NCBI GenBank assembly: GCA_038496445.1
Contig: JALMLS010000441.1
Location: 1-64,000, forward strand
DNA length: 64,000 bases
DNA from: Trichosphaerium sp. ATCC 40318
Lineage: Eukaryota > Protista > Tubulinea
Reading direction: 5' to 3'
In this document: piece after piece, positions 2,416 to 57,576 of the stretch
How the letters are laid out: every line of letters starts with the position of its first letter
Numbering within the stretch: position 1 is the stretch's first letter
Program-made: the position numbers and the translations under genes
The notes under the pieces: generated by a model
Database searches by the model: none
What the model was told of the DNA's origin: nothing
What the model saw: only the letters and a program-made list of their open reading frames with translations

Positions 2416-5400
2416 ATGGCGTTTCGACGAGAATCATATCCTATCTAGAGACTTACCACAGCACTTTAGGTGACCCGTTGGAGTACAAGATTGTTTGCGT
2501 AGGCCAAACATTTTTAAAAACGTCATTGGTCAGCTCTTTCGTAACGGAGACGCAACAAGTACAGGTCAGCCGCGTCGTTTCGTTTCAAAACAAAAATATT
2601 ATTTCGGCGCTTTTTTTCAAAAAAACTAACTTGACGAGCAGTATGACCCTATAATAGAAGAAAACTATACCAAATCTATAAAAGTAGATGATAAACTTTG
2701 TAATTTGATAATAACGGACACAGCCGAACAGGTATGAACCAAGTTTTTTAGTGTAAAACAAGAAAAGTTATTTTTGGAACAACCCTTTTTTTCTTTTTTT
2801 ATGTTCAGCTAATTCTGACTTTTCTTTCATTTCAGGATGAATTCTCGTACGTCTGAGTATCTTTTATATCTTTAATATGAAAGATTATGATATATTTCTT
2901 ACTCACAGCGAAAGGTCAATGCGAGAAATGTGGTTTAAGAACGGTGAAGGTTTTATTTTTTTCTACAATGTGAGGTCAAGGACAAGCCTTGAAGGACTTA
3001 AGTTTCAGTTGAACATGATGTTTAATTGTAAAGACAGTAGGGATATACCAGTTGTACGTTATAACGCTTACGTGACCTACAAGTGTTTTTATTTCTCTTG
3101 AACAACACGCCGTAAAAACCCGATATTTTATTAATTTAATTAGACTCTTTCGTTGATTTTTACGTAGGTCATTGTCGGTTGCTGTTACTCTCGTAGTGAA
3201 GTAGGCGACAGAGAAGTATCAAAGCAAGAAGGTAAAGCATTTGCTGCAGGTGTTTGCGATAGAGGTATTCCGTATTTTGAGGCTGACGGCGACACTTGGG
3301 TACTTTTTTCTTTCGAATATTACACCTTTTGTTCACTTCTTTTGATCTTTAGACTAATGTGGAAGAACCCTTCGAGGCTATTGTCAAACAAATAAACACT
3401 AGAAGAAGTCAACCAGCTATAAAGAAGATAGAGAACCCCAAACTACGGTTAAAGATATCAAAGAGAAATCTTCTGAGGATGGAAATCACAGACAAAGCTC
3501 AGAAACAAGGGCTGAAGCGTCTTCCAAAACCACTGATTCCTTACGAAAACAGCGTGGCTCATCGTATTTTGAAGCACTTGCGAGGACGTACGCGGTGACC
3601 TTCCAAAATATCGTTGCGAACTGACAATTGGTTTCTGTAGCGTTGGCAGAAGAAACCTCATTGCCGCCAAAGGTAAACGAAAAGATAATGACAGATGCTA
3701 TGGCTCAGGTGTTTGTGTTCACGGACAAGCCTACCAAGATTGCTGACCTGTGTTATCATGCTGAGAGCGAGTTCAAGAGCCTTAGGTTTCCTTTCGGAAA
3801 CAATAACAATCGGCCTCAGAGTCATGTTCGTGTTATAAATTTGAACTCTGGAACAGCAAAGTTTCAATATTCTAAAGCTGATATAATCATTCTTCATATA
3901 TCATCTGTAGAGTATCAGTGGGTATACGGTTATGTACAACATACGTTTTCATCGTCGTCTCCAATATTTATTATGCTACGGGAACCTAATAGCAAGATTC
4001 CTATTTTACAAGGTAAGCCAAAGATTTTTTTCAGTTCTGATGCACTTTCTTAAGCTCCTTTTTATTTAGAGATATCGATGGCACGTTGGTTGTCTGGACA
4101 TATTATTGATTGGCCTAATAAGTCAATAAAGTCTGTGAGAACTCAGATAATAGGCGTTATTCTTTATGAATCCAATTTGAAGCACGAGGCAGACTTCCTT
4201 GATTATTACAGAAATTGGGTTGAATCTAAACCGAAATTGTATCCTCCATTGACGACAACACGGCATCATACGCTCAAATTACTTGGTACTACACTTCTAG
4301 ATGTTTTTTTTAAAGTCTACAGTGATAAATGGCTGACATGAATCATTTTAGTTCTTGGTCATGGCGGTTGCGGTAAAACCTCACTCATCAACTTTTTGAA
4401 AAAAAAAAAGAATATAATTACACAGTCTACTATTGGTTTTGATAGTAGTTTTCTAAGGTAAACGTTGTTTTGACTTTTTGATGAACTTAATCTGTACTTT
4501 GTCCGTATGTTCGGTTAGATTAATGGTTTGTTGTAGCATACGATCCAATAAATTCACTGTTTATGACTTTGCTGGACAACTCGAGTATTTATCTGTCCAT
4601 AAGCACTTTATATCCGCAGAGTACTCAATCTACATCATAGTGGTACGCATAGAAACTCTAGCATCTATTGTCACGTGCTTGATCAAGAGTGGATCGCATT
4701 TTTATCCAAAATCTGTTTTGTTCTTCTTCTCGCAACTCATGGTATTCTTAGTTCGATGCATCACAACAATTTGAGGTTGCTATGAAACAAATTAAGCATT
4801 GGCTTGCTTTACTACGTGGTAAACTACCTAGCACAACACTCAATGCTATTTTTTTTGTTGGAACAAAGATAGACGAAGTCAATAATCGTAATACAATCGA
4901 TACCCTCCGCACTGATCTAAAAGCATTCTTGAGTCAGGAAACAGAATTTACAAACCATACAATTTCGTTCGTCTCTTCAATAACTGGTACTGCGCTTCAC
5001 CTTTTGGTAACATCTTGATTAACATGCTGTAGGTGAGGGAGTTACACAAATGAAGGGACACATAGCTGAAGTGTATAAAAGTATGAAGCCATTTCCTAAG
5101 GTATGTAAAAAAATGGCGGTAGAAACCGTGACGGTTTTTTATTGGAATGGAAAAAACTGAGATCTCACTTCTCAAATAGGTTGCAAACTTATGTCAAGTC
5201 ATTGCAGATACTGCTTCACAAGGAAATCATTGTAGAGTATTTACGAGTGTGTACGTGTTTGGCAAGACCGGTTGTAGTTCGCCTCAGCGTCTTGTTGTTT
5301 TGATTGCTTTTCTAAGTTCTCTTTTTAGCTCCGACTTTAAAGACATCTGCAAGAAAGAGTTCAAAAAGAGCCATACTGATTGGAACAGGTTAACTAAACT

Positions 5401-8400
5401 CGAGTTTGCGACATACCTTGAGTACTTGCATAACACTGGAGTGCTAATGCTAGATACTGTACGGATTAACTGTTTTGTTTTTGGTTCATCCCTCCTTCTC
5501 ATTTTTTTGGTTTTAGACGACTGCTATAATTTGTACAAAGCCAGCTATCATGTCTAAAATCTTGAGCAGTTTTATTGGACCTGATACACATATCAATCGA
5601 CTTCAGGAGCAGAAAGGAGGCTGTGGTGGTATGAGGAATCCAATAGTATCTTTAGAGGATGCTGTAAAACGTTTGCAACGTGTTCCTACTACTGATGGAG
5701 AACCATACAGCCGGCTCATTTGCTTATCGATTCTCAACTTTATGGAGCAGCTCAAGATCTGTTATATGCTGTCACCGCAAGAGGAGGTACGCTTGAAGTG
5801 ATAAGAGTGGAATCGTGTACTTATTGATCGATAGATATGTTACGGAAGACCTGGATACATGTTTCCAATGCTCCGACCAAAAGCTGAAATGGCCTATCTA
5901 CCTCCTGTAGTAGGTGATCGTGAGGGGTTACGTCTTTGGACGGCTAGACTTAAGTCCAGCGAAGATGTTAGTATTACCAGCGATTTTTTTAACTCGATGC
6001 AAGTTGAACTGAGAGGTAAGCAAAAGGATTGAAAGCGTTTTTTGCAGAGATTTACTTTTTTTCCTCGCAGATTTTCACGACTTCAAGTACAAGCTTTTCT
6101 TGAACTCTATGGTCCTTGCAGATAAACAAGGTAATATGGTGTTATTATACCACTCAGTAGATTCCATCATTATGATGGTGCGGGGTACTGATCCAACAAC
6201 TTGGGTACTTCCTATTTTTCTCATTTTCGTACTCTTTTTTATTGTTCTTTTTTATTCTTAACTTTGGTTTTGTTTTAGCTTTCTACGCTATATGCATTTA
6301 TTCCTCAATTGAAGAGAGCATCTTTTGATGTACTTTGTCCTTCGTGTACGGTATCAGGGACGTTCCAGTCATTCGATAGAAGCCATGTTTGTAAATCTTC
6401 TACAACAACGCTTACAGAACAGACTGTTGATCAAGGTGTTCCTATTGAAACTCTTGAAGGAGTTGTACCTAAATTATGGAGTCCAAAAGGAGGTATTACA
6501 TTGTTTTCTTTTCATACAGACTGTAGTTTAAGTCATTAATGTCGTTTCAATTAAGGCGTCTCTTTCTTTGAAAAAGGAGTATGGCAACAACAGCCTCAGT
6601 TGAAGTATACTGTTCTAGAGCAGTGTGAAGCTATAAAAGAGAGAAAAAGCGAGTACTTACGTGCTCGGGATATGTTCTACCAGTTTGTTGGTGTTGACAA
6701 TGCATCATTCTTTAAGCTTGATAAGGTTGTGTTCTTTCACAATCCTACTCTTGAAAATAAGTTTCATGCTTTTTATCAACGTGTTATATCACGTGTTGTT
6801 GACCAACATGATCCAAATGATATTGAGGATTCGACAGATGATGGTATGTACTAGCTAACAAGGTGTGACGATGCTAAGCAAAGTTTAGGTGCAAAGAAGG
6901 CTTGGAAACAATGGTTCTTAGAAAACTTCTAACAATGCCATATTCAAATTTTTTTTTATTTAGGATACTTGAAAAGTTAGATAGTTACGCTATGCGTGGG
7001 TCTGGGAATGAACAAGTGAATTTATTGCCAGGGTGCGTAACTTTGTTTGTCGTTTTGACTTTTTTTCTTACTTTTTTCTTTGTTTAGGTTTCATGGCACC
7101 ACAGAGGTATTTTTTCGCATATTCTAAGTCTAAGAAGGCTTTACTAATAAAGAGGTTATAGGAATCATCGTTTAAAATCGCTGAGAATAATTTTTTGGAG
7201 CCTCGAGAGCTCAACAATCAGACAGATCCTGGTTATTTTGGTACTTAATCGGCAGAATGTCAAACATGTCACTGATAGTCTTTGGTAGGTAAAGGCATAT
7301 ACTTTACGCAATCGCCAACGTATGGTATGGTTATATTCTTTCAAGTTTATTCTAAGCCCTAAATCACGTGTAGGATCCAAATACGCTGAACTAAAGCAAA
7401 AGACAGGTCAACACTGTCTCCTCATATCGGTACGGCAACTTTTTCAGAAAAAACAAAAATAGACACCCTCCCTTCCCTTTCTTTGTTAATGCTGCTCTTT
7501 AGTGGTTGATTATGGGTAAACCGTATCCTGTCATTGAGACACCGGATCCTAATGATCCAAATACGTTACTTGGAAAGCCATGCAAGGCTGGCTATGACTC
7601 TCATTATGTTGTTGTTAAAAAGGCTGGTAATGATATGATGTATATGCCATGTCGTCCTGCTGAAGAACCTGATGCAGATGAAGTTGTAGTATTCAACAAA
7701 GACCAAGTAAGAAATAGTTAAACGCACACCTTCTTGGAATTAATGGCTATTTAGATACTGCCGCGATACTTGGTGTACTACACTAGGAGTGGCACCAATA
7801 CGTTTGATACATTCGAACTTAGCTGGCGAGATTGTAGAAACTTGGTTTTGTGGGTAAGTACAGCAAGAAGAGATGGTCTTGGTCCGATACTGGCCACAGT
7901 AATTGCCACGACTTTGTGTTGAACTGCTTTTTTAGGTGGATGATAATCTAGCTGATGAGAATAAGTTCACTGTAAAAATGTTGGAGAAGGATCCTAAAGC
8001 GAGTGTCAAGGTGAGCCCCTGATATGAACATAAGTTGATTAGTAATGTATTTGTATGTAGGTCATACCCATGACGTCAATCACGGAATTGATGGCATTTT
8101 TGAAGCAGTATGCTGCCAGTAATATTAAAAAAATAAAGGTCATTACAAATCAGTACAGAGCGAATGATGGCAAGCAAGATGCTGCCAATAATCTTGTCAA
8201 GTACGTTTACCCATCAATTTTTATATGCGTTCTTGATTCAAAAAAAGAGCGCACAAAGAGCTGGTTGCTTATTTTTTTCCGTTTTTAGAGTTGTCAGGGA
8301 GAAAAAGAAGTGGAAGAAAATTCCAATATTGATATACGGCAACAATGTTGACAGCGCTGGTTTTCTTGTCAAGAAATATTCAAAGGTTAAGGCCACTACT

Positions 8401-8436
8401 AAGGCAGTTGACTTGCTTCACTTTTGTTCAAAGTAA
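2416..8436 (+). CDS. Roco-family multidomain protein: pseudo-Ras + degenerate G-domain-like region + Roc-COR + PARP-type ART + receiver-like domain
   Basis: Spliced in frame at the domain junctions. Ras-like: MATLGDPLEYKIVCVGQTFLKTS..YDPIIEENY..DTAEQ..GEGFIFFYNV. Roc: LKLLVLGHGGCGKTS, STIGFD, YDFAGQLEYLSVHKHF, FVGTKID, FVSSITG. COR: LEYLHNTGVL, FMEQLKICY, YMFPMLRP, CPSC. ART: FHGT, DPGYFGKGIYFT, GYDSHY, DADEVVVF, ILPRYLV. REC-like: VLWVDDN, VITNQYR, IPILIY. Stop at 8434-8436. Confidence 0.85.
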
Positions 8437-8799
8437 TCCATTTTCCTTCGCTGGTGTGTCGGTTCATTGTACAAAGAAAAAAATAAGAAATCAAGAAACA
8501 GATTAATACCTGTTGTCCAATAAAACAAACATGTGAAAAGAACTTTATCTTGTATTCAACTATGTGTTTTACATCATATATCTATGTGAGATTGGCGCCA
8601 TCATGTCCAGCAGAGGAGACTGTATTTTTTGGAGGTAATATGCCATTGAGGTCAACGGTGCAAAAGCTAAAAGGTTGTGTTGCAATTTCAAATAGTGCAA
8701 GGAAAACTCATAAGCTAGCTTTGGTACAAGGAGATAGGGACTCAATTCATAACATCGATACTAAACATGGCCCCAATGTTGCTTTTTAGTTCCTTCAAA

Positions 8800-9741: not shown

Positions 9742-12700
9742 ATGTCAAACCAGCACCAAGAACATGCGCTAACATTGGCAGGTATTAGCAAACCCTTCTT
9801 TAATACAATGACTATAACGATATTACAATAGCTGAACTGAAACTTCTTCAAACCTCCTATGATACTTCTATCATGTGCATGTACTTTGATTCAAAACAAC
9901 TTATAAGCAAAATAAAGGATACCACAACAGGTACAATTTTATCTGAGGTAGCAAAGGTTCACATGATTGTAGTATATAAACTGAAAAAGAAGCTACGTTG
10001 CCTCAAAACAGCTGATCAAATTCTACTGTGTTCAGGTTTGTAAATAGTTGTACATACATAGTAACCAATTTAGTTTATGCCAGTTTACCTATTATCAAAT
10101 CAATGTGTTTAAAGGCAGGGGCAGATATCAGTGCTCCAGATAAATACGGAAGAACAGCGTTACACAAAGCAGGTACTATTAATAAAAATACAATGTATGG
10201 TCTAACATTTCCCAGTATTTCATGGATACAACCATATTGTTGAATTATTGCTCAATGCAAACACAAATATCAATGCTGCTGATAAAGATGGGCAGACAGC
10301 TTTACATATAGCAGGTAGGCTTGTAAATAATATACAACGTAAGTTCTCACACTTTCCAGCACGCCATGGACGCAATAATACTGCTAAATTATTGATCAAT
10401 GCAAATGCAAATGTCAATGCTACAGATAGCAATGGAAAGACAGCTTTACATAAAGCAGGTACTTTTATAAACATACAATGTATGGTCTCACACTTTTTTA
10501 GCATGCCATGGACACAACAATGCTGTTGACTTATTGATCAATTCAAACGCAAACATCGATGCCGGAGATAAAAATGGTGAGACAGCTTTACATAAAGCAG
10601 GTACTGTCATAAACAAACACTGTATGTCCTCACACTTTCCAGTACACCGCAGACACCATAATACTGTTAAATTATTGATTAATAGAAACGCAAGTATCAA
10701 TGCTACATTTAGAGATGGATGCACAGCTTTATACAAAGCGGGTACTGTGTTGTAACAATTTATGTTCTCACATTTCCCAGCCTTTAATGGGCATAATGAT
10801 ATTGTTCAATTATTGATCAATGCATTTGCAACAATCAATGCTACTAATAAAGATGGACACACAGCTTTACACGCTGCAGGTATTCTGTTGTAAGATATAC
10901 AATGTATGGTCTAACCTTTTAGTGTTTCATGGGCACAACGACACTGTTCAAGTATTGATCAAATCAGATGCAAATATCAATGCTAGAGATAAATATGAAC
11001 AGACAGCTTTACACCTAGCAGGTACTGTTGTGCATATACCAATGGTGGCCTAATCTTTCCAGCATATCGTGGACATTATGGCACTGCTAAATTATTGATC
11101 AACGCAAAAGCAAATGTCAATGCTGCAGATAAAGATGGTCAGACAGCTTTACATAAAGCAGGTACTGTTGTACTATTGTAAGCATAAAATGTATGTCTAA
11201 CACTATGTAGCATGCTGTGGACACAATGACACTGCTAAATTATTGCTCAACGCAAAAACAAATATCAATGCTGCAGATAAAGATGGTGAGACAGCTTTAC
11301 ATAAAGCAGGTACTGTTGTACTATTGTAAACATGCAATGTATGTTCTCACACTCTCCAGTATGTCATGGACACATCAATACTGTTGATTTGTTGATCAAC
11401 ACAGATGTAGACCTCACTGCCACAAACAAAGATGGACAAACAGCTTTACATATTGCTGGTTCTATAAACATTTTTGAGTTATAAAATATCTAACGCTTGC
11501 TAGTTGACTATTGCCACAGTGGAATAGCTGAGAACTTAATTAAAGCAGGTGCAAACGTTGAAGCAGTAAATAATAAAGGATGGACACCTTTATATTTTGC
11601 AGGTGATACTAGGATACCAGAAGACTAAGCAGTATTTTAACTCTTTATGTAGCACAATATAGACCTACTGAAGTATTTGTGAGCTTATTACCTGAAAGAG
11701 ATATTTTTCCACGTGCCATGACTGAACAGAGGTTTGATTTCAAAACAGTATTTTTGAAGGTTGTTGACAATGATCCTGCATACACCAAAGTGTTTGAGAC
11801 TCTATTGGCGCACCTTCCAATCAATCAACAAGGTCATTCACTATGGACTTCATATGCATATATGACAAGTCAGAAATACATTTTTGCAACTCAATTTCCA
11901 GAGTGGAGATCCAAGCTTGCAAAATGGTTACAATACTTGGTACAACTTTCAAGTCAAAAGTATTGTACTAATCGAATACCAAGCCAACACGTTCTTATTT
12001 TAAACTTGCAATACAAAAGGGTATTTGTTCATTAATCTGTACTTACAATCCCATCTTTGTGCAATCCCCAGTACTAACACGTGTGTTTCAAGTTCAAACT
12101 GCTCATCATTTTGTTAATAGAGCTTTTGGGTTCAGCAAGGAGACCTAATGGAAGGTATTCTGTGTGATTTACCACATAGTATGTGGAGCGAAAAACAAAA
12201 CGTAACTGGTACTATTGCTCAAATGTGTGAAGAGGATGGGCTGTGTATAAACTCCATTCAACAAGATAAACAACATTGTGCGTGGTTTAATACAAGAATC
12301 AAAAGTGTGGTGTTTACTGTTATTATAGCATTTGTAGACCCTCACATGTGCGGATATTGTATTGCACACCAACCTATCAGAAGTACTGTATGTCTAAAAG
12401 TTTTTTATTAAATACTTTTTTAACTGTTGATAAAGCGTATGGATATTGTTGGGAATAATCTCAAGTGTAAGATTGGTGCTTATGCTATTCAGCCTTTTAT
12501 ACCCAATAGAGTTTTATGTGACACTGCAGCTGGTACAATCAATACTTTTCTCCAAATAGATTGATTTTCAACAAGGATTAAGAAGTAAGACATCATGGGA
12601 CTTAAACCCTCGATTGGAGTATGCACGTGCCTGGGACAGATCAAACAACAAGTAGTGTTTTAATGTTGTTTAATTCATTTTTATTTTAACAGTTCCTAAA

Positions 12701-14113
12701 GAGGTTTTGTGGAAAAAGCAACTCATTACAGACTATTGGACCTTTTTGACCAAACCGACACTGTAGCCAACAGAGAGCTAAAGGTTCTTCGTAAACAGAT
12801 GTCAAAAATGCATGGATATGACCAAGTCACTGTTAAATCAGCATATCTTGTTTGCAATGATGTCTTGCTTCAGAACTTTGGCATGTACAATACAATAGTT
12901 AAGCATAGGCACCAGTATGTAGACATAAATGTTTACGGCTATTGATTGTTACCTAGAGAACTGCCCAAGTTGTTTTGTAGGAATGATTGGGAGCATGATG
13001 CCCACAACACTAAACGGACAAGCGTTTATAGCAAGTTTTCATCTTTGATTGCTGGATCAACCAACGCAGAACAGGTGCTGTTGTAATAACAACCCCTATA
13101 TGACTTATTAATTGTTCAGTTACCTGTTTTGTTAATGGCACATGGAACACGTGCAAAAGCAGCTTATAGTATTGTAAAAGCTGGATTTGGAACTGTAAGT
13201 GCATTGGATGCTGGATATTATGGACAAGGAATCTACTTTACAGTACTATTGTGTTCACTTGGTTTTTTCCTCTAACATGTTACCACAGAGTAGTCTCACA
13301 TATGCTGCCTCATATGACGAATCTCAAGGTGAAAAAACACTTATTCTGAGTTTAGTCACACCTGGAAATGTGTATCCTGTATGTACATGGGTTTGTTTGT
13401 TTATTTACAGCTTTGCTAGGTAATAGAAAAACCTACAGATCCTATTAATTTTCAGGGTAAGCCTATTAAACCTGGATACCAAAGTCATTATGCAGTTGTA
13501 AACAAATTGGGGCAAGCCGTGAAAGAAAATATTGACAAATGCAAATGGGATGAGTTGGTTGTAGCTCAAGGTAAGTAGTCATACGCCAACCATTATTGGT
13601 TTTATTTATAACGTGTTAATTTAGATGTACAAGCTGTTGCACGTTATGTCATAACAGTTGTAAAGAAGCCACGGAAACGAGTAATCCAGAACAAAAGCAA
13701 AGGAGCAAAAAAGAAAGCAAACAAACCAAAGCAGGCAAAGATTATCAAAACGATCGGAAGTGAAAACCTAGAAAACAAAGAGGTTGATAAATTGGAAGAT
13801 GATAGCGAGTCAGATGAGTTTTCTGATGACGACTCATTTAAAACTAAACGGTAAGGCTAACAAGACAGACTAGCTTAGTACTTATTTACTACAAAGAAAA
13901 TTATGGGCAGCTGCAAATCCAAATCAACTTGATCAACCGAGTGCACAAGATCAGCTTGTAATATCGTTAACACAAGAAGTCACAAAACTCAATCAAGAAA
14001 ACAAGGAAGCAAATACCAGAATCACGAAATTGGAGGAAGATAATGCAAATAAATGCAATCAAATTGCTGAACTACAAGCCCGAATTGCAATGCTTGAGAG
14101 CAAGAGTTCATAA
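9742..14113 (+). CDS. Ankyrin-repeat + PARP-type ADP-ribosyltransferase + C-terminal coiled coil (paralogue A)
   Basis: ATG 9742 (MSNQHQEHALTLA). About 11 ankyrin exons (GxTALHxA/xxGHxxxxxLLIxxxAxINAxDKDG) at 10074-11602. ART motifs: LMAHGT, DAGYYGQGIYFT, LVTPGNVYP, GYQSHY, WDELVV, QAVARYV. Heptad-rich end ...IAMLESKSS* (TAA 14111-14113). Confidence 0.88.
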
Positions 14114-28305: not shown

Positions 28306-29601
28306 TGCCACGTGATAAAATAATCCATTTGTAAAAGTAGTGTATGAACCAAAAAAAAAAAGTTGTATTTGAACCAGAATCTTGTTTTCGTTCACGGTTG
28401 TGATTTGTCAGTTTATATTTGAAACAATTCACCAGACTAAAATTCTACTCCGTGTAAGTCTTGGGACGTATAGGTTCGGAATGAGACGATTCCGGGATTC
28501 TAGAAATGGTCTGACTTTTTGACAATATCAGCCAATCGTGGACCGGAAAAAATATTCCTGAACCGTATGCGTCTCCTCGGATATTTATCGGTGCCTAATG
28601 AAAACTTTAGTACTAATACCAGTAATAAATTATCGCTGTCTAAGGTGTTTTTAACCGAAGAAAAGATGTGCATTTATAGCGTGCAACAAGAAACGAGATT
28701 GGATCTGTGGATTTTTTTTTTCTTTCGAAGGTCATGGAAATTCGTCGTGGAGGGGAACGCTGAAAACGCCGAATAGGTCTCGGAAAACAACACGCAAACG
28801 TATGTAAATGCGATACAGATAAATAAAGGCAGTTTTGGTTAAAAAAAAACGGTTGGATTTTTGATACTATTTCTATTTATATTCAATACGCGTGGACGCA
28901 ATAAAATACAGTGACGGCTCTTTTAAGAGCGTATTAGGTTCAACGAGTAATTATTTGTACACTTTCAACAACGAAAAGGCGCCCCAAAGCACAGAAACAA
29001 CAAACCAATAATCGTGTTGGAGGTTTTTTTTTCAAACCGACAACCTCAGCACACAACGGGTATGTAGATAGCTACGATAGTTACAACGGTGTTCTAGGTG
29101 CCTTGAAAACTGAATATTTTCGCTATAGACCTCCAGTCTTACAACCGTGTAGCCTAATATAGCATAAAAGAAGAAAGCACTTTGAGGCACCAATCCAAAA
29201 AAACTAAAATTCTGCCAAAAAAGGCAGGTACAAAGAATTTTTGTGTGGTGTGCCCTAGAAGTCGCTTCTCTTATCCCTGTTGTCAGGTCTTCTATCACGT
29301 AACCCCTATGAAAAATGCGTTAAAAACATAGCATAGGCAGTGTTAATCGATCTGCAGCTTGAAAGATGTGATGATGTAACTACATCATGCATTGTCGAAT
29401 ACTTCTATTCTGTACACCACAGCTGCTTACTGCAGTATGGTGAACAAATGGTTCAAATTTGACGTTGCAGGACCACCAACCTGCAGAGACTACATTCAAT
29501 GCATTTAGCCTCCTTGGGAACAAGACATGTCTTAAGTACCTTGGTGGGGATGAGCACACTGTACTCTACACACTTTACCACAACCAAATATTTGGTTGTG
29601 T

Positions 29602-30316
29602 TGTAACTGTTCTCTTCTATCATTATAACACCCATAGCAGGTGTAGAAATGTTAATCGAGTTCTGGGTTACAGACATAGTACCCTAACAGGTGCATGCCA
29701 TCAGTTGCCTCAACATCTTTTGTGATGTAGGGGTGCTACAACTTTTACCCACAAGGAACGGCACTTGTCCAAGTACTTATGGAGGAAAGACACCAATGTG
29801 TCAAGAGTGATGCCCTTAGTAGGCAACATTTGAAAGCACCAATGCTCTTGTTCTCTTCTAGCATTATAACACACATCCCAAAAAAGGAAAAGTGTAGAAA
29901 TGCTAATCGAGTTCTGAGCAATGTTACACCAATGTGCAAGTCACATGGTTAACATTACACAAGGTATGTGTTAAAGTCCTTAATGGGCTACAACAAACCA
30001 TATGAACATATAACTGACCTTTGTTCTCTTCTAACATTATAACACCCATAGCAGGTGTAGAAATGTTAATCGAGTTCTGGAGCTAATACACAGTGTGCGC
30101 TAACTTGGATCACTTCTTCTAGCATTATAACACTTCTTCAAGGAGGTGTAGAAATGCTAATCGGGTGCTAAGCCAGGTATGCATTTACACAAGGTATGTA
30201 TTGAAGTCCTCAGTGGGCAACAACTAAACTACCTGTGTATGAAAGTTATTATCTCTTCTAGTATTATAACACTTCCCATCAAGGAGGTGTAGAAATACTA
30301 ATCGAGATATTGTAAC
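29602..30316 (+). repeat. Five dispersed copies of a ~65-80-nt stem-loop module (TTCTAGCATTATAACAC-loop-GTGTAGAAATGCTAATCG)
   Basis: Copies at ~29602-29672, 29843-29920, 30018-30081, 30104-30172 and 30245-30316. Arms are conserved; loops and spacers differ. Confidence 0.9.
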
Positions 30317-30918
30317 ACATCATTACAGTCCTTAGCATGTACAAATGTAACATGCCTGGGTGGATGAAAGGAATCAATGATTCCAACTAAGTAATTCAAG
30401 AAACTGTATGACACGTCTAGGGAACACCTAAAGGAAAGACAAGTTCTAGTACTTGGGTGGGTAACAGATGTGATGCATTGACTCAATTGACGGAAAGGCA
30501 CTCAAGCCAAGTACATCAACATGAGCATGCAAGTGTTACAGCTTCAACCTCGACAAGGAAAGGGACCAGCCGAGTACTTGAGAGGAAAGGTAATTCATAC
30601 GCTGTGTAACACATCTAGGTAACACCTAAAGGAAAGACGAGTTCTAGTACTTGGGTAATAGATGTGGCTGGTCTGAATGGCAATGGCAGATTAAAGGAAA
30701 AGGCAGTCAACCCAAGTACGTTTAGGTAGTGGTACACCTTCTAACTCATCTAGCAAAACAAGACGGAAATGGTTGGGCATTACAAAAGGTATGTAGTGAA
30801 GCCCTTATGGATGTATGACTAACCTTTATTTTATACCATAGTAGCGCACTAAAGGATGGGAGGATCACACTTGGACAAAGGTACAGCCCGTACTGCTTAC
30901 TGGCGTTTAGGTCAAATA

Positions 30919-31390
30919 CAAGATGTAGGGGTTCAATGAGGAGGTACAAGTTCATTTGCTAACTAGCTGCGCTATACACACTAATGATGAAGGTGTGTAT
31001 AGCCAATTGATCCAGGGAATGCAGTTTTAGGTACTAGCACGCAAGATGTCGGTGTTCAATGAGGAGGTGCAAGTTCATTTGCTAACTAACTGCGCTATAC
31101 ACACTATTGATGAAGGTGTGTATAGCTAATTGATCCAGGGATATGCAGTTTTAGGTACTAGCACACAAGATGTCGGAGTTAGTTCATTTGCTAACTTAGC
31201 TGCGCTATACACACTATTGATGAAGGTGTGTATAGCTAATTGATCCAGGGATATGCAGTTTTAGGTACTAGCACACAAGATGTAGGGGTTCAATGAGGAG
31301 GTGCAAGTTCATTTGCTAACTAACTGCGCTATACACACTAATGATGAAGGTGTGTATAGCCAATTGATCCAGGGTTATGCAGTTTTAGGT
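30919..31390 (+). repeat. Tandem repeat, 4 x ~123 bp, each copy containing a perfect 11-bp hairpin
   Basis: Units start at caagatgt (30919, 31042, 31166, 31276; unit 3 has a ~15-nt deletion). Each contains GCTATACACAC-tawtgatgaag-GTGTGTATAGC. Confidence 0.93.
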
Positions 31391-32854
31391 GCTCATCTTG
31401 TGAGCAGATGTAGATGTCAGGTGGTTCTATTATTGGCATTAACTATAAACATGAGGGTAAGTTGTGGTGTAATTGATGGTAACTTCTGTGCAGGTTGGCT
31501 AAGAGATGTTGGCAAAGGGATACAGATTTGGGTGCAAGTGGTGGCTTAGCATAAGTACGTGTTTATTGGATGTTTAAAAGTGTATTTACTAACTGTTCTA
31601 CCTTCGCAACTTGGCTTACAATAGGTAGGTACAAGGTGGGGTATAGATTCATAGGATGGTGCGTTAGGCAGGATTCACAGGATGGATGGCTATTGGGATT
31701 GTTACACCTACTGCTCATTATACGACTGTGGTGGTATCTGGACTGTAGTCTGTTCTTCATCCTCTTAGCACATGCCAGCTGGGTCAGTTTTCACTGGTTG
31801 ACCGAGTTTAACACGTGTTGAGATGACAAAGGAACAGATTACAGGGCAGTAGGTGTAACTCACAATAGGGTAGGTACAATGGGATGTGGATGCACAGGAT
31901 GGGTGCAGTAGATGTAATCATTAGGTAGGTTTCACAGGTTGGCTTTGGGCGATAAGGGACGATGGCTTGCAGAACGGTACATATGTAGTGTCCTTTAATA
32001 ACTTACTTTCTATTCTATATGTAGGGTTTCGCTGGTTCACACAAGGGGGTTGTTGTAATTAATAAAATCCTTTTTCTTCTTTTAATTAACATTTCACAAG
32101 TTTTCCTTTTTTTTTCTTTTCTTTCATTAGCATGCTTACCGCAGGGACAGGCAATGTAAAGCAACTTTAAGGGCGGCATAACTAAATCAAACAAAAAACC
32201 TAAAAGTTGCTTCTTGCTATTGCATTCTGAGACTAAATACATCTATGGGCCAGTTTCAAGGCCAATCCTTGTATACTTTTTTTTTACATCTCCTAGATGA
32301 CTTTATGCATCAAAAAAGTAGAGCACCACTTCGCTATCACGTGATATTAAAACAGTTTCTAGATTTAACATAGTTACATGCTACTAGTGTCTGGGAATGA
32401 AGAAGTGAATTTGGTGCCAGGAGGTTGCTTGCTAATCGGCATTGCCTATTGCTGAATTAACCAAACAAACTAGTATCTTCAGCCTATTGAAGTTGTATTG
32501 CTCCACATTTCTATGTTCAGTACATTGATAAACTGCTTGAAGTTTATGATTATATTTCACATTTAGTTCACCTTTTTGTGTACTTTATTACCAACACTTC
32601 AACTCTTGAACACTATTTCCGGAATTGTTGAAGTGAGATTTGATAACTACTGCTTTGATTGTCATGTTCAAAATAGTTTTTGAAGTGTAAGATGGTTACA
32701 AGGTGACACAAAGATTTCTTTTAACCAGTAATAGCAAAATCAAATTTCGTGCTTTTCTCGAAACTCTCAAGAAAGCGATGCTGCCCAAATGTTTTTGATT
32801 TTCCTGGTATTGATAAGGACAATTTCTTTCCCTCAAGTCCAAAAAGGATAAACA

Positions 32855-34506: not shown

Positions 34507-35796
34507 TCATTTCTCCATGTTTTTTATCGTCAACCCACATGTTTTGTATACAAATCGATTTTTTTTTGTTTGTACACCATCAAACCATGTGGTTTGATTC
34601 ACTAATCGTCCTGTTTCATGCCAAACCTTTTTTTCGCCATGAAGTTTACCATCAACCCACATGCTTTGTATCTTTAGTTGCCCATTTTCATACCACTCTT
34701 TCATTTCACCATGTTTTTTATCATCAACCCACATGCTTTGTATCTTTAGTTGCCCATTTGCATACCACTCTTTCATTTCACCATATTGTATATCATCAAT
34801 CCACATGCTTTGTGCACTAAGTTTTCCACTTTCATGCCACTCTTTCTTTTCGCCATGTTTTTTATCATCAACCCACATGCTTATTTCCTCGAGCTGTCCA
34901 CTTTCATACCAATCTGTTTTTTTACCATGGCATTTACCATCAACCCACATGCTTTGTGACCCGAGTTGTCCATTTTCATACCACTCTTTTTGTTCACCAT
35001 GACATTTACCATCAACCCACATGCTTTGTGACTTGAGCTGTCCATTTACATACCACTCTTTTGTTTCACCATGTTGCTTATCATCAATCCACATGCTTGT
35101 TGCCTCGAGCTGTCCACTTTCATACCAAGCGTTTTCTTTACCATGACATTTACCATCAACCCACATGCTTTGAAATTGTAGTTGTCCATTTTCATACCAC
35201 TCTTTTTGTTCACCATGTTGTTTATTATCAACCCACATGATTTGTGCCTCGAGCTGTCCACTTTCATACCAAGCTTTTTCTTTACCATGACATTTACCAT
35301 CAACCCACATGCTTTGTGACTCGAGTTGTCCATTTTCATACCACTCTTTTTGTTCACCATGTTGTTTATCATCAACCCACATGATTTGTGCCTTGAGCTG
35401 TCCACTTTCATACCAAGCGTTTTCTTTACCATGACATTTACCATCAACCCACATGCTTTGAAATTGTAGTTGTCCATTTTCATAGAACTCTTTTTGTTCA
35501 CCTTTTTTCTTTCCATTTATCATCATACATTGTAGCTTGATATTTCCATTCTCATACCAAACTTTACATGGACCTGTCCTATATTGTTTAATACATACTT
35601 TTCCACTTTTATACCACCCTATCCATTGTCCTTTTCTTTGTAGTGTTGCATCAAAATGTGTATTGATTGCTGCTCTTTTTGAGAGTGTATGGAATTTTGT
35701 GAATGCTTCAATGTTGAACGTGCAGAAATATGTTTGAATTTCACATGGAAGATCAAGTACAGTAAAAGCCAAGCTCTTTGTTGAATTTGTTTCCAT
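34507..35796 (-). CDS. Intronless F-box-like + MORN_2-repeat protein
   Basis: N-terminal VLDLPCEIQTYF (F-box-like), then ~14 repeats of 24 aa (WYENGQLxxQSMWVDGKxHGExKE). The 72-bp units form a 144-bp higher-order period. Confidence 0.9.
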   Translation of the reverse strand: METNSTKSLAFTVLDLPCEIQTYFCTFNIEAFTKFHTLSKRAAINTHFDATLQRKGQWIGWYKSGKVCIKQYRTGPCKVWYENGNIKLQCMMINGKKKGEQKEFYENGQLQFQSMWVDGKCHGKENAWYESGQLKAQIMWVDDKQHGEQKEWYENGQLESQSMWVDGKCHGKEKAWYESGQLEAQIMWVDNKQHGEQKEWYENGQLQFQSMWVDGKCHGKENAWYESGQLEATSMWIDDKQHGETKEWYVNGQLKSQSMWVDGKCHGEQKEWYENGQLGSQSMWVDGKCHGKKTDWYESGQLEEISMWVDDKKHGEKKEWHESGKLSAQSMWIDDIQYGEMKEWYANGQLKIQSMWVDDKKHGEMKEWYENGQLKIQSMWVDGKLHGEKKVWHETGRLVNQTTWFDGVQTKKNRFVYKTCGLTIKNMEK

Positions 35797-48726: not shown

Positions 48727-49089
48727 TTAATAATTCAGAAATAAAATCTATGAGCTCTGTATAAATTGACTTTTTGGGTCCACATTTCGGACTTGCACTA
48801 TTTGTTTGTATAATTGTCAATTTCCATAAAACTCTACACGTTTTGAAGTCTAATAAGACACTATGTTATTTTGGTGCGTTTACATATCTAAGTTTGAACA
48901 CGTGTTTGGAAGGGCATTCTTTTTACAATGATTATTTCTGTAAACAATTGATTCTTGTTTTCTAATCTGTTGCGTTTTTTATTCAGTGCAATTGCTGCTA
49001 TTGGAAGAGTTCTACATTAGCTGGTTTAGAATACTTGCTTACGACGTGGTTTGACTAGTATTTTTTTGCTTTTTTTTCAAACAAACCAA

Positions 49090-50055
49090 ATGAAGCGCAG
49101 TGCATCTTTATCAATTAATGAACCTCCCAAGAAGATAAGGAAGTTAACACAGTATTGTAATAACGCTCTGGAGTCGCTACCTGATGATAAACTAATAGAA
49201 CAACTAACAAAGTATCAAGTACCAGTAGAATCGCTCTCTGAAGAGATATCAAAGCGTGTTGGCAATATTTATGCGGAAAAACTGTTACAATCAATGTTCG
49301 ACCTAAACAAAGAGCTAGAGCTTCCAAACATCAAAACAAACAAGGTTGCTAACGAGCACGTGCTATCAGCATTAAAGAGTAAAGTAGATACAATGATAAA
49401 CACCAACCAGGTCCTTTCTCGTTTAGATAAGTGGATAACATCTTTGAGGGAGTTTTTGAAGAACCCCACTGATGACGATGAAGGTGACAATTACTGTACT
49501 AGTGAAGAACAAATCAACCAATTATTCCTTTTGACACAATTGGTACAAGTCCAAAGTGTAGGTATGTAACATCAGATTAACACAAAGTAACCACGTAAAA
49601 CAAATTGTGACTAAAGATACCATGTTATTAAGTGTTTCACTGATTGTTTATTTATAGAAAGAAATGAAACAGAAGTACAGAATGATGAAGGATACAATAT
49701 GAATGTTGATGTAACAATTGGAAAAGGAAATGAAAGAGTGGGTATCTCTTTCAGCTATACAGACTGGACTAAAGGCTATTCAAACAGCTACATACGCATT
49801 TTATCCATATACAGGCATGGCCTAAAATATAGTGAAGAAATCTATAAAAAAATTTACGATTGCGATGAGACTAGTTTAGAAGGGATACAGAAATTTCAAC
49901 AAGATGTTTTCAAAGTCATGTCACCTCACCTTGGAAAAGAGGTTAACATGGCTTTTACAACACGTCAGTTTTGTATCTTTTTAGATATCTTGTTTAACTG
50001 TGACAATGAAGAGTTCTATCTAAAAGGAGCTGCAGTAAAAAATGGCGTCATTTGA
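49090..50055 (+). CDS. Two-exon hypothetical protein with an N-terminal NLS-like motif
   Basis: MKRSASLSINEPPKKIRKL... spliced at ~49562-49658 to ORF 49699-50055; AATAAA downstream. Confidence 0.65.
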
Positions 50056-51747: not shown

Positions 51748-51846
51748 CTTATGCAACATCCCAAACAGCCAAAAATGACACATACATACTACACGCGCAT
51801 GTTGAATACAATACATCATTTTTGGCTGTTTGGGATGTTGCATAAG
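51748..51846. other. Perfect 31-bp inverted repeat with a 37-nt loop
   Basis: cttatgcaacatcccaaacagccaaaaatga (51748-51778) is the exact reverse complement of 51816-51846. Confidence 0.95.
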
Positions 51847-52847
51847 ATAGTGAACAAAATTGTTTTATAAACAGCGTTGTTTGACCTAACCTCAGGGATA
51901 AGTAGTACATCACTGTTTAAGCGGATTTGGCCTATTCATTCGACGGAAAAAGGTGTTGATGCTCTTAAATAAGGAATTACAAGTTCCTTTTTTGCTGAAA
52001 AGATCACGGCACATATTTTCTATGATAATTGTGTATAATGTACTTATTGTGCATATCAGTTTCGATCTTCCTGTTGAAATACAAACCTTAAACTATCATA
52101 TACGGCAGTTTCAGGCGAGTAGCTGACTGCTGTGTTACTGACACATTTTTTACTTTTTCATCAACTGCTTAGAGAAAAATTCTCTATTTCTTCAATAACA
52201 CGTGGAAAACTTTTTTGGCTTTGCTACAGTTTCTCACCGCCATGTTTTTCTGTCTATTTTACTGAACTCGTGCTTTGTAGTCATCACAATACATTTAGTA
52301 GCTCTGCTTTTATCTATGACAACCCACCCATATTTTGGGCGTGAAGTAATAGCTACTCAAAAAAGAATGTCGTGATATATTGTCACGTGCACAAAAGGAA
52401 CCGGTTCGTAACGTACGCTTACGTTAACGCAGGTATCGCGAGACACTTTACGTGAATATTTTTGTGTTTCTACATTCTACCTTCTTTATTGCGACTGCGC
52501 GTCCTTTTAATAATACAGGAGGAATGGAATGGGTAAATCTGCGAAGAGTGATTGCGCTACAACTGCGCGTAACTGTGAAAATACTACAAACCAGGATTAA
52601 TATCTTGTAGGACATACGAATATCCGTTAATTAGTTGGTTAAAGCTACAACGGGAGGAAAATAATCGTGTTGCTGTAACAAATCAGTAAAATAGACCGTG
52701 ATACTACCTTTGGACTCTCATTCTTTTTAATCAGAAGCACAAAACCAGAACCGTAACGCGAGCACAATAACAGTTCAACGAAAAACCGGAGGTCAAGTCA
52801 CGCCGCTTAATATTGTTTTACGATAACTTCAAGAGTGACAACACGTC

Positions 52848-55800
52848 ATGGCAGAACCACAGCGTGAAGAAACTCAAGATCCAAATGGTTGAAAATAACG
52901 CTTTTTTTATAATGTTGGTAACAATAACATTTATTCATAGTTGAGTGGAATATGTGGCATCCAATTATCTGCGAAAATGAACTGACCGCAATTGAACTTG
53001 TGTGGTTTTTTGCAGGTATGCAATATGTGGTAAGCATAGTTAACCAGTTGTAGTAAGAAATGGCTATGGAGAAATTGTTTCATCGCTTATTAAAGTGAAC
53101 ATAAATGTTGATGTTGTAAATTCTAGCAGAAAGACAGCTTTAATTTATGCTGGTAATGTCACATATGGAATACAGCGTGGGTTTACTAACATTACTATGT
53201 AGCCTGTAAAAAAGATTATAAAATTGTATCAATGCTAATCAAGGCCGGAGCAAATATTGAGGCTGTTGATGAATATGGAAACACAGCTTTGATTAGGGCG
53301 GGTAATACCATTGAGATACAAAATACAACTTGATACCACTCACACTATTAGTAAACAATGGAGATAATAAAACTGTATCAGTGTTAATCAAGGCTGGAGC
53401 AAATATTGAGGCTGTTGATGAATATGGATACACAGCTTTAATTTATGCAGGTAATACATATTGAATACAAACATGTTCGCTTACATCACTATTTAGCCAG
53501 TAAGGGACATTATGAAACTGTATCAGTATTAATCAATGCTGAAGCAAATATTGAGGCTGTTGAAATAGATGGAAACACAGGTTTGATGAGGGCAGGTAAT
53601 AGCATTGAGATACAAACATGTTTGCTCACATTACTATTTAGCCGAATTGAACCAATATGAAACTGTATCACTATTAATTAATACTGGAGCAAATATTGAT
53701 GCTGTTGATAAATATGGAAACACAGGTTTGATTCATGCGGGTAATAGCATTGAGATACAAACATGTTCGCTTACATTACTATTTAGCCAAAATGGGACAT
53801 TATAGAATTGTATCACTATTAATTAATGCTGGAGCAAATATTGACACTGTTGATGAAGATGGAAACACAGCTTTGATGAGTGCAGGTAATGCCACATATG
53901 GAATACAGCATGGGTTTACTAGCATTACTATGTAGTTTGGGAAAATCATGATAAAATTGTATCAATGCTAATTAAGGCTGGAGCAAATATTGAGGCTGTT
54001 GATGAATATGGAAACACAGCTTTGATTAGGGCGGGTAATACCATTGAGATACAAAATACAACTTGATACCACTCACACTATTAGTAAACAATGGAGATAA
54101 TAAAACTGTATCAGTGTTAATCAAGGCTGGAGCAAATATTGAGGCTGTTGATGAAAATGGATACACAGCTTTGATTCAAGCAGGTAATAGCATTGAGATA
54201 CAAACATGTTTGCTCACATTACTATTTAGCCAGTAAGGGACGTTATGAAACTGTATCAGTATTAATTAATGCTGGGGCAAATATTGAGGCTGTTGATAAA
54301 AATGGATACACAGGTTTGATGAGGGCAGGTAATAGCATTGAGATACAAACATGTTTGCTCACATTACTATTTAGCCAAAATGGGATGTTATGAAACTGTA
54401 TCAGTATTAATTAATGCTGGAGCAAATATTGACACTGTTGATAAAGATGGAAACACAGTTTTGATGAGTGCAGGTAATGCCACATATGGAATACAGCATG
54501 GGTTTACTAGCATTACTATGTAGTTTGGAGAAACCATGATAAAATTGTATCAATGCTAATCAAGGCTGGAGCAAATATTGAGGCTGTTGATAAATATGAA
54601 TTCACAGCTTTGATTAGGGCAGGTAATAGTATTGAGATACAAACATGTTCGCTTACATCACTATTTAGCCAATAAGGGACATTATGAAATTGTATCAGTA
54701 TTAATTAATGCTGGAGCAAATGTTGACGCTGTTGAAATAGATGGAAACACAGCTTTGATGAGGGGAGGTAATAGTATTGAGATACAAACATGTTTGCTTA
54801 CATTACTATTTAGCAAAAATGGGACATTATGGAATTGTATCACTATTAATTAATGCTGGAGCAAATATTGACGCTGTTGATAAAGATGAAAACACAACTT
54901 TGATTTGGGGAGGTAATAGCATTGAGATACAAACATGTTCGCTTACATTACTATTTAGCCAATATGGGACATTATAAAACTGTATCACTATTAATTAATA
55001 CTGGAGCAAATATTGACGCTGTTGATATTAATGGAAACACAGCTTTTATGTGTGCAGGTAATGTCATTATATAAGATACAACATGTTTGCTCAAGAGAGG
55101 ATTAGCACACAAAGGAGACAAAAAAATCATGTCAATGTTAATCTATGCTTATGCAAAAATTTACACAGTTGGTGAAGATAGAAACAATGCTAATTCGGGT
55201 ACTGTACTCAATCAAAAAGTAAACCATCATTATTTGCCTTAACTGTTTTTTGGTAGTTATATCACCAGACAACACAATGTGGCAAGACTTACTTTTTTTG
55301 TTATTTAAGCAACTAATTTCAAATGCTCTTGGATCTGTTGTAGCATTTGTAACTTTTTTACAATACTGTCCAAGTGGTAAAGAATGCAAAGTAATGTGGA
55401 AATCTTGTTTGTCAAACGTATACTTGGCTTCTGATAAACAAACGCTTTTTGAACATATTAAGCAATGGCTTCCATACTTGGTATGCCACTATGGAACAAT
55501 ATGTTAGTTCTTACTAATCATACAACATTTAGCCAACACGGTCTTATTTTAAACTGGCAATGGAAAAAGGCATTTGTTATTTAATTGGTTATATTTATAT
55601 AGCCAGATACAGCTATGATAATGTACCTTTACCACAAATCATTAAGCTAACTGGTTTATCAGGGATTATTTTGGAAACAAGATGGCCTATTAATGCATGG
55701 TATCTTTAGAGATATGCCTGATGACACATGGGACAAAAACCTGGATGGGCAGTTTTTTACATATCGCAATCATCTATCATTTATCACAGGTACAACAAGT

Positions 55801-57576
55801 TACTGTCTTACAAATACTAAAAAATATAAGAATTAAAACATGAAAACGGATGGGATCTTAATCCACAATTGTATTTTGCACATTCTTGGGACAGATCTAA
55901 AAGCATGTACGTCTGTTCAATGTGCCATTGTGGGTATCTTTATTTATTTGAAAAGAGGAATTATTACAAAAGCGACTCACTATAGAACATTAAATCTTCT
56001 TGATGAAAATGACAAAGTTGCTGTCAGAGAATTGAAAATCCTACAGCAAGATATGTCAAAAATGCATGGTTATGACAAATACAATATTGTTGAAGCGACT
56101 CTTGTTTACAATGAAATCTTGACAGAAAACTTTGGTCGATCCAACAAAATACTAAAGCATAGGCATCAGTACGTTTTTTTGTAGTTTATTTAGTCCTTAC
56201 ATATTTTAGAGAACTGCCTGCATTTTTTAAAAAGCAAGATTGGAAAAAAGATGGCAACAAAAAGTACAAAGAGAGCGTTTTCATTAAATACAATGCCATA
56301 CCCACTCAGGAATATGAAAGTACATACAATACAGACTATTTAAAAGAAGACAATACAGAAGGACAGGTGGTGTTCATCAACGATATCTTACTCTCACACC
56401 TGTTTAGTTACCAGTGATATTGATGGTTCACGGAACAAGTGAAAAAGCAGCTTACAGTATTGTAAAGGCTGGTTTTGGAACTGTGAGTGCTTTGGATTCT
56501 GGATACTATGGTCAAGGCATCTATTTTACAGTATGCAAAAAACAGTCACATTCCATTGCTGATTCCACTATAGCGGAGTATAAAATATGCGTGTTCATAT
56601 GACACTGGAGGAACCAAAGAAAAAACAGTTATTTTGAGTCTTGTCACTCCTGGCAACGTATACCCTGTACATTAACAAAAGTTTATCATGTTCTTTATTA
56701 ATTGATGACTATAAAAAAGGTAAAACCAACCGACAAGTTAAGAGGACAACCGATAAAACCAGGCTACCAAAGTCATTACACATTGGTTGATCACAAAGGT
56801 AGACCTGTCACAGAAGATAAAGTTACTAGTGCAGTGTATGATGAACTTGTTGTCGGACAAGGTACACCCAAAGAAGAATGTAACGATCATAAACTAACGC
56901 TATGCAATCAGATACTCAAGCTGTTGCTCGCTATGTTCTCAAACTACTACCAAAAGAGCAGAGTAAGAAAAGAATCAAAACAAAAAAAACCAAGAAAGGA
57001 GATAAAAAACCAAAGAAAGGGGATAAAGTTTCAGAGCTAGTTGGTGGTTCCGATGATCTTTCAGATGATGAAGAAAATTTTCACAATAGTAGCAGGTAAT
57101 CTATTTCTTTTCTTGTTCTTACTTATTGACTTACCAGGAAATTGTGGGCTGCCCGCGATTTGGACACAACTGATGACCAACAATCAAGTACCAATAATGT
57201 AAATCTCGAACTAGAGTCTTCACAAAAAACACAATGTGAAATCGAGAAACTAAAGAAAATCAACGTAAATATGAAGGAACTTCATGAGAATATACATGCA
57301 AGGCAACAACAAGATATAGCCAGCTTAGACCAAGACAATATCATCTTACAAAGAAACGTCAATCACCATCAAAAAGAAAATGCCAACTTATCTCAAATTA
57401 TCAACACCCTAAAGCAAGATAATTCGAGCCAGCAACAAGAAATTACCAACTTATCACAAATTATCAACACCCTAAAGCAAGATAATTCAACTCAGCAACA
57501 AGAAATTATCAACTTATCACAAACCGTCACTACCCTACTTGCCAAAATAGCCCACCTTGAAGGTAGCAAGAAGTAG
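52848..57576 (+). CDS. Ankyrin-repeat + PARP-type ADP-ribosyltransferase + coiled coil (paralogue B)
   Basis: ATG 52848. Fourteen 99-nt ankyrin exons plus one degenerate exon (~53054-55198). Linker shared with paralogue A (WLxYL/PTRSYFKLA; KATHYRxL..MSKMHGYD). ART: MVHGT, DSGYYGQGIYFT, LVTPGNVYP, GYQSHY, YDELVV. 21-aa coiled-coil repeats; TAG at 57574-57576. Confidence 0.9.

Follow-up and report, generated by a model that had tools for sequence, protein, structure and literature searches.

The question raised by the first 64,000 nucleotides (nt) of contig JALMLS010000441.1 of Trichosphaerium sp. ATCC 40318 is how three genes that carry an ADP-ribosyltransferase (ART) domain, each behind a different N-terminal sequence, are related to one another and what they may do. 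This whole stretch is called the window here, and its contig is designated C248. The initial annotation took the three genes for members of one ART subfamily in which the sensor modules had been swapped, and proposed a defence system analogous to NLR/TIR proteins. The firm conclusion of the analysis reported here is that the genes belong to a modular family. Its members share a conserved PARP-like enzyme as output, which is coupled to ankyrin repeats, to a Roc GTPase or, in relatives, to membrane receptors.

Sequences and searches

The assembly consists of 70.3 Mb in 642 contigs with a GC content of about 37%. Published figures for Trichosphaerium sp. are 70.8 Mb, 37.7% GC and 8.7 introns per gene (PMC10980511). 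The window genes are interrupted by many GT-AG introns of 40–75 nt, frequently with a CTAAC-like branch site. They were searched exon by exon, with the transcript proteins P0001, P0002 and P0152 as stand-ins for domain searches and folding; the joined spliced translations of the window genes were used for alignment, identities and trees only. The splice models of the ART domains are manual and homology-guided (GT-AG).

Three ART domains in the window

A six-frame motif scan and a scan with the family hidden Markov model (HMM) both give three ART domains in the window, all on the forward strand. The initial annotation had placed the domains correctly, and the motifs and the H-Y-E triad it described are present.

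6582–7790, + strand: ART1, nine exons (6582–6843, 6889–6913, 6964–7032, 7088–7106, 7162–7240, 7289–7324, 7374–7429, 7503–7706, 7755–7790)
12709–13675, + strand: ART2, six exons (12709–12914, 12957–13074, 13120–13242, 13289–13378, 13420–13570, 13625–13675)
55960–56962, + strand: ART3, six exons (55960–56168, 56210–56366, 56408–56530, 56574–56666, 56720–56861, 56912–56962)

The triad is read as FHGT, GIYF and DEVVV in ART1 and as HGT, GIYF and DELVV in ART2 and ART3, and is also found in all 40 sampled paralogues. ART1 seemed broken at first because HGT lies on a 19-nt exon (7088–7106) and the DxGY[YF]GxGIYFT motif is divided by a 48-nt intron (7241–7288). When spliced it is a clean open frame with eight predicted GT-AG introns of 45–73 nt, of which the donor at 6914 (GTTCTT) is weak.

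A family profile made from 50 database relatives, with the window domains excluded, scores 154.9 bits with ART1, 263.7 with ART2 and 253.5 with ART3, as against 10–27 bits with the genome's own canonical PARPs. Transcript proteins P0001 and P0002 score 36.5 and 30.9 bits with Pfam PARP (PF00644), above the cut-off of 26.7 bits; single ART exons of the window score only 19–21 bits, and the exon of ART2 that carries the H and Y residues (the H-Y exon) gives an E-value of 2.6e-4 by itself. The AF2 model of the transcript-encoded ART (P0002, positions 165–410) has a pLDDT of 89.2 and a pTM of 0.88. A Foldseek search with this model yields 367 PDB matches at E ≤ 0.001; the best 50 are all PARP catalytic domains, the top one with an E-value of 3.7e-10. 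Tankyrase, PARP1, PARP3 and PARP12 appear equidistant in the fold search, with E-values of about 1e-10 to 1e-9 and 12–19% identity. The family profile, when compared with solved structures, matches ZAP/PARP13 (1.5e-8), PARP10 (1.3e-5) and PARP12 (5.9e-5) best, and also PARP4, PARP2, PARP14 and PARP3; no tankyrase is found in this search at E < 0.01. By its fold, its triad and its Pfam score the family is a member of the PARP superfamily, and the enzyme is probably active.

In a 50-sequence alignment of the family (A1) the catalytic E and Y are invariant, and the signature reads NPxL, HGT, LDAGYYGxGIYFT, PGNxYPV, GYQSHY, YDELV and QxxP. The motifs that were thought to be distinctive of the three window genes are therefore family-wide and not specific to a subfamily, since the alignment shows them across the relatives. 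In three proteins, P0003, P0005 and P0011, Gln replaces the catalytic His (MVQK, MLQGT, MIQGT), and P0003 and P0005 display two tandem ART domains.

Relationship of the three domains

Trees were made by an IQ-TREE quick search with SH-aLRT support, with the canonical PARPs of this genome included. Comparison with PARP clades was a check proposed by the initial annotation, and as far as the canonical PARPs of this genome go, the family is split from them by a long branch with a support of 100. A single clade (support 100) unites every ankyrin-type copy with ART2, ART3 and the three transcripts, and in a search of 1.84 billion cluster representatives this clade consists of sequences from this organism only. 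ART2 and ART3 share 60% identity and have the same intron positions and phases. ART1 lies outside their clade (SH-aLRT 100) near the base of the family, where the branching order is unsure because the root sits on a long branch; it is 36–38% identical to ART2 and ART3 and has different intron positions. Because of this deep branch, the three domains represent one family but not a recent subfamily, and the proposal of a single subfamily with swapped sensors does not hold. The different N-terminal heads are, on this tree, the product of old domain shuffling.

Size, arrangement and expression of the family

Copy numbers given here are counts of exon matches. Searched against the genome, the H-Y exon of ART3 (41 residues) gives 125 matches, about 105 of these with 70% identity or more, and the exon of ART3 with the catalytic Glu gives 118. 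The ART1-type exon is present in three identical copies (contigs C248, C504 and C234) and at about 55 diverged loci, ten of which are on contig C3. The exon with the G3 motif of the gene 1 Roc domain has 41 matches, and about 34 of the 38 non-self matches are situated 2.8–3.3 kb upstream of a same-strand ART1-type exon; the Roc-ART family thus comprises at least 34 loci. While the architecture of the Roc type is taken from match coordinates only, that of the ankyrin type was sampled at ten loci whose upstream flank exceeds 2 kb, and all ten show same-strand ankyrin repeats there. The family total is about 150 loci, and about 100 ankyrin-ART and at least 34 Roc-ART loci are among them. These are clustered and expressed and their enzyme is under purifying selection, so the suggestion in the initial annotation of a modular ART family with different recognition or switch modules is borne out.

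The H-Y exon matches form at least 21 pairs or triples within 10 kb, many being inverted or tandem pairs less than 10 kb apart, and contigs such as C41, C93 and C64 hold six to nine copies each. Exons identical to those of the window are found elsewhere in the assembly: those of ART3 on C304 (30223–30672), and those of ART2 and ART1 on C504 (7257–18202) and C234 (69520–72729), with ART1 present on both. The Roc exon region on the duplicate contigs is only 93–94% identical. C304, C504 and C234 either are haplotigs or stem from very recent segmental duplication, and the copy counts are approximate because some copies are probably of this nature and inflate them. In 40 of 40 sampled copies the exons are open and all catalytic motifs are kept.

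Several paralogues are represented by transcripts. MMETSP transcript P0152 matches paralogue L063, with splice sites exactly at the predicted introns, and transcript protein P0001 is nearly identical to paralogue L058. The 2.6-kb transcript contig of P0002 (L071) shows spliced ankyrin repeats, an apparent retained intron with a run of N, a linker, the ART and a coiled coil. Thus the layout of ankyrins, linker, ART and coiled coil is transcribed as one unit in close paralogues. An isoform of L063, P0151, keeps the intron that precedes the H-Y exon and stops early; regulated or incomplete splicing is possible.

The ankyrin-ART genes

Genes 2 and 3 have the same general plan, with the following features.

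9873–14100, + strand: gene 2; short N-terminus, about 11 ankyrin repeats, a linker of about 270 amino acids (aa), ART2 and a lysine-rich tail; ends approximate
10076–11610, + strand: ankyrin array of gene 2; a 99-nt exon per repeat with a period of 142–149 nt; Pfam Ank_4, E = 1.7e-10
53060–57576, + strand: gene 3; ankyrin array, linker, ART3, basic/acidic stretch and C-terminal coiled coil; 5′ end approximate, stop at 57574–57576
53205–55060, + strand: ankyrin array of gene 3; 13 regular one-exon repeats and degenerate flanking ones, with introns of 46–50 nt
55250–55959, + strand: linker of gene 3, between the ankyrins and ART3; common to gene 2 (11680–12700)
57138–57576, + strand: C-terminal coiled-coil tail of gene 3; heptad-like sequence rich in Q, N and L

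Eight of the gene 2 repeats are found by a strict pattern and the others of the approximately 11 are inferred from the period. The array of gene 3 contains an internal duplication of about 733 nt and gives an E-value of 1.7e-10 with Pfam Ank. The count of 11 ankyrins in the initial annotation is in good agreement with this for gene 2, and the 14–15 given for gene 3 become 13 regular repeats plus degenerate ones.

The linker exons of both genes have no Pfam or Atlas match, and the linker of the ankyrin forms is modelled by AF2 as helical with low confidence (pLDDT < 50). P0002 is 84% identical to gene 3 in the first linker exon and has the same end point (tblastn). A coiled-coil tail of the same kind as that of gene 3 is found in P0001, P0002 and P0152. 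The segment between the ART and the coiled coil (56960–57095 in the window, and the tails of the same three transcripts) is conserved and consists of a K-rich part, then a D/S-rich part, then NFxSxRxLWA; it could serve in nuclear targeting or as a region for automodification.

The Roc-ART gene

Gene 1 carries a different head, as follows.

2416–8436, + strand: gene 1; Ras-like piece, Roc GTPase, an unassigned region of about 450 aa at the position expected for COR, ART1 and a C-terminal tail; ends approximate
4357–4900, + strand: Roc G domain of gene 1; G1 GHGGCGKT at 4357, G3 DFAGQ at 4565, G4 TKID at 4863

The Pfam Roc match (E = 7e-4, one exon) is under the Pfam cut-off because a single exon was scored, and the Ras-like piece gives an E-value of 0.03. 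The Roc-COR head given in the initial annotation is therefore retained as Roc, and COR is not detected. A Pfam search of exons 5249–6536 shows no COR match, an exon-wise search being insensitive; an Atlas lookup likewise gives none, and a genome scan for COR-A (PF16095) finds 36 places, none of which falls inside the window or at another Roc-ART locus.

Genes 1 and 2 are neighbours on the same strand with a gap of about 1.4 kb, as the initial annotation had it. This neighbourhood is seen again only in the duplicate of the same segment on C504 and not at other loci, and the adjacency is thus probably incidental.

Relatives in other organisms

A search with half of the ART domain against 1.84 billion cluster representatives shows 329 relatives at E ≤ 0.001, of which two are below 1e-30, and these two are transcripts of this organism. 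The nearest named relatives are from Tubulinea, i.e. Amoeba proteus, Copromyxa protea and Pyxidicula operculata. The long relatives display other modules besides the ART: leucine-rich repeats (LRR), LRR with TSP1, EGF-Ca, FG-GAP, TSP1, zf-UBR, or Ank with SH3. In 20 of 26 long relatives there is exactly one strongly hydrophobic helix, 60–85 aa ahead of the ART, and the K plus R count is 56 after the helix and 20 before it; several have starts that resemble signal peptides. Proteins of this kind, with an LRR, EGF, TSP1 or FG-GAP ectodomain and a juxtamembrane LP motif, include P0018, P0075, P0051, P0022, P0019 and P0007. From these sequence features the long tubulinid relatives resemble type-I membrane receptors whose ART is cytoplasmic.

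The wider searches that the initial annotation proposed find the family in this genome (about 150 loci, from exon matches) and in two chlamydial genomes but not in the viral contigs scanned. A scan of prokaryotic genomes gives full-length members in two metagenome-assembled genomes of Chlamydiales/Parachlamydiales, with 100.8 and 74.7 bits (L076, 3773–5113, and L077, 3476–6520). The H, Y and E residues are present in both, and one has C-terminal LRRs. Members of the Chlamydiales/Parachlamydiales are known as amoeba symbionts. Viral contigs show only four weak partial matches of 16–25 bits in the H-Y region, which are not family members. The ART1 exon has no relative among metagenome contigs, a collection from which records of this genome are possibly excluded.

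Selection on the enzyme and on the repeats

For the H-Y exon in 37 distinct copies, the proportion of synonymous differences (pS) is 0.43 and that of nonsynonymous differences (pN) is 0.074, a pN/pS of 0.17, and the adjoining intron has a divergence of 0.33. The copies are thus old duplicates in which the enzyme core is kept by selection. In the ankyrin array of gene 3, eight variable codons show a pN of 0.41, compared to 0.124 for the introns and a pN of 0.128 for the framework, all of these being raw proportions of differences. Divergence at the binding-face codons of this array is therefore about three times that of the introns. Among the most variable positions are the beta-turn flanks and the start of helix two, positions that are randomised in designed ankyrin binders.

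Comparison with known systems

The closest resemblance in layout is to tankyrase (PARP5a/b, clade 4), where ankyrins are also N-terminal to an H-Y-E PARP-fold domain. Tankyrase chains belong to the top fold matches (E about 4e-10, TM 0.55–0.68). Recruitment of substrates via the ankyrins is probably a shared feature, together with an element for self-association. However, in the ankyrin forms described here the linker (about 270 aa) and a coiled coil at the C-terminus are found instead of SAM; a Pfam search of P0002 from the linker to the C-terminus gives PARP only, and the linker exons of the window give no SAM match. In the fold match only 16–19% of the residues are identical to those of tankyrase. 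Here about 100 fast-diverging copies are present, with one repeat per exon and hypervariable surface codons, whereas tankyrase is found as one or two conserved orthologues. Orthology with tankyrase was considered and rejected on the lack of SAM, the number of copies and the lack of a profile match at E < 0.01. Low-copy orthologues nested within tankyrase would have been the contrary outcome to the initial annotation, and neither the profile and fold searches nor the approximately 100 loci show such a pattern. Convergence, which the initial annotation had suggested from the missing SAM and the different catalytic signature, is for this reason the better reading.

A combination of ankyrins and PARP is also found in clade 1 (Dictyostelium ADPRT3, C. 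elegans PME-5), but there the catalytic domain is of the DNA-repair type and the copy number is low. The combination has arisen independently several times (Perina et al. 2014, PMC4245714).

The clade-3 mono-ARTs (ZAP/PARP13, PARP12, PARP10, PARP14) give the best profile matches, though these are weak and partial. Clade-3 mono-ARTs are generally without the catalytic Glu; the amoeba family differs in that it retains the Glu of H-Y-E, and it has no WWE, macro or CCCH domains. Members of clade 3 evolve rapidly in host-virus conflicts (PMC4038475).

Gene 1 is similar to Roco proteins (LRRK2, Dictyostelium Roco kinases and bacterial Roco) in its Roc G domain, its long following region and its enzymatic output. 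It is unlike them in that the output is an ART and not a kinase, and in that COR is not detected by the exon-wise search.

The ankyrin arrays resemble the repeats of fungal NLRs, which have near-identical tandem repeats, a varying repeat number and change focused on the binding surface. The fungal ANK, TPR and WD repeats are highly similar to one another and their surface sites are positively selected (PMC4986451). In contrast, there is no NACHT or NB-ARC here, the effector is PARP-like and C-terminal, and each repeat has its own exon. A Pfam search of P0002 gives PARP only, with no NACHT or NB-ARC; in L071 the ankyrins are directly upstream of the linker, and gene 1 has Roc. An NLR-type layout was rejected for the ankyrin forms on this basis.

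No paper was found in the literature on Roco fused to PARP, on receptor-type PARPs in amoebae, or on the present expansion. What is new here is that ankyrin-ART and Roc-ART are linked as one family with a deep split, that purifying selection on the enzyme is measured, and that the family has membrane-receptor relatives and chlamydial homologues.

Function and alternative explanations

The explanation to which we give somewhat better than even weight is that the genes constitute an expanded tubulinid family of PARP-fold ARTs, with a conserved output and interchangeable inputs, whose repertoire tracks fast-changing partners. The inputs would be the hypervariable ankyrin arrays, the Roc GTPase switch and, in related amoebae, a receptor ectodomain with a membrane span. 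In the ankyrin forms the array would recruit a protein partner, and the ART would move ADP-ribose from NAD+ onto this partner or onto itself, with recruitment of the substrate as in tankyrase. The C-terminal coiled coil may provide self-association, the part taken by SAM in tankyrase. In the Roc form, GTP binding would gate the ART, which stands where other Roco proteins have a kinase. What is tracked is most likely non-self, i.e. intracellular bacteria, viruses or other conspecific cells. The number of copies and their clustering, the way in which enzyme and repeats differ, and the presence of the domain in chlamydiae would all fit such a role in recognition, which may be one in defence.

Several points weigh against this explanation. 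Part of the copy count consists of haplotigs or recent segmental duplicates, and the splicing of the three window genes is modelled, with RNA support coming from paralogues. At the variable codons pS is also high (0.32) and pN/pS is only 1.27; the excess over the introns could come partly from gene conversion that homogenises introns and framework, and variability at surface positions is a general trait of ankyrin repeats. No NOD/STAND module, death-fold or known immune adaptor is seen, and the PADLOC defence models give nothing meaningful. In amoebae, signalling families have often undergone large expansions within one lineage with no immune role involved, and the membrane-receptor relatives suit general signalling equally well.

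General signal transduction is a serious rival, and a possible if not a probable one. Here the ART would be the alternative of this lineage to the kinase, and the ankyrin forms would scaffold endogenous pathways in the manner of tankyrase, whose ankyrins recruit endogenous substrates (PMC4245714). The type-I-like relatives with a cytoplasmic ART, the kinases that Roco proteins normally bear and the lack of immune adaptor domains in the Pfam and PADLOC searches all fit with it. What it accounts for less well is a set of about 100 paralogues with near-identical scaffolds in which the binding face changes faster than the introns, as this is unusual for housekeeping genes, and the confinement of the ankyrin-type clade to this organism among all the cluster representatives searched.

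A more far-reaching scheme is unlikely but can be formulated. The tubulinid ART would be a general receptor output, comparable to receptor kinases, on membrane ectodomains, Roc switches and ankyrin arrays; in this species the approximately 100 ankyrin forms would be an innate recognition repertoire without NOD that directly ADP-ribosylates proteins of intracellular bacteria or of viruses, and chlamydiae that infect amoebae would have captured the domain as a counter-measure.

A suicide system of the NLR/TIR kind, in which a ligand-activated ART consumes NAD+ and kills or arrests the infected cell, appears very improbable. A conserved NAD+-using enzyme is indeed found on variable repeats, and the coiled-coil tail could drive activation that depends on oligomerisation. 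Overactive PARP1 is known to deplete NAD+. However, there is no NOD/STAND between sensor and enzyme (Pfam shows PARP only in P0002), the fold is that of a PARP transferase with a transfer-competent H-Y-E and not that of a TIR or SIR2 NADase, and there is no sign of autoinhibition, the linker model being of low confidence. The NLR/TIR analogy of the initial annotation is therefore weak; because a NOD module is missing, it holds only in outline.

That the copies are mostly decaying or selfish pseudogenes, produced by segmental duplication or assembly redundancy as the identical copies on C304, C504 and C234 and the many close pairs might suggest, has almost nothing to commend it and is rejected, since the sampled exons are all open with every motif, the enzyme is under purifying selection at a high pS, and several paralogues are transcribed and correctly spliced.

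Other sequences in the window

Two genes with MORN repeats are found on the reverse strand, at 34507–35796 (MORN_2, E = 3e-58) and 63352–63864 (E = 3.8e-11). Directly downstream of gene 3 are an F-box-like gene (58030–58563, + strand) and a gene with F-box and LRR_6 (61781–62998, + strand); the chlamydial member L077 likewise couples its ART to LRR_6 repeats. Upstream of gene 3, at 49051–50055 (+ strand), there are two long open frames of 172 and 118 aa without a family match. The stretch 29350–32070 carries no open reading frames. A search of the entire window with Rfam at gathering thresholds shows no match.

Significance

An expanded family of modular ARTs with a conserved output and interchangeable inputs has several implications for the biology of this amoeba. 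The Roc-ART genes extend the Roco family to an output other than a kinase. The membrane-receptor relatives suggest a signalling route in tubulinids for which no paper was found. The ankyrin-ART genes constitute natural libraries in which ankyrin binders are coupled to an enzyme. Provided that the enzymes are active, the family would rank, across all genomes, among the largest of PARP type, and ADP-ribosylation, and not phosphorylation or NOD-driven oligomerisation, would be the output of a variable receptor. The family may thus offer a testable system for non-self recognition in non-animal eukaryotes that graze on bacteria and are hosts to chlamydiae and giant viruses.

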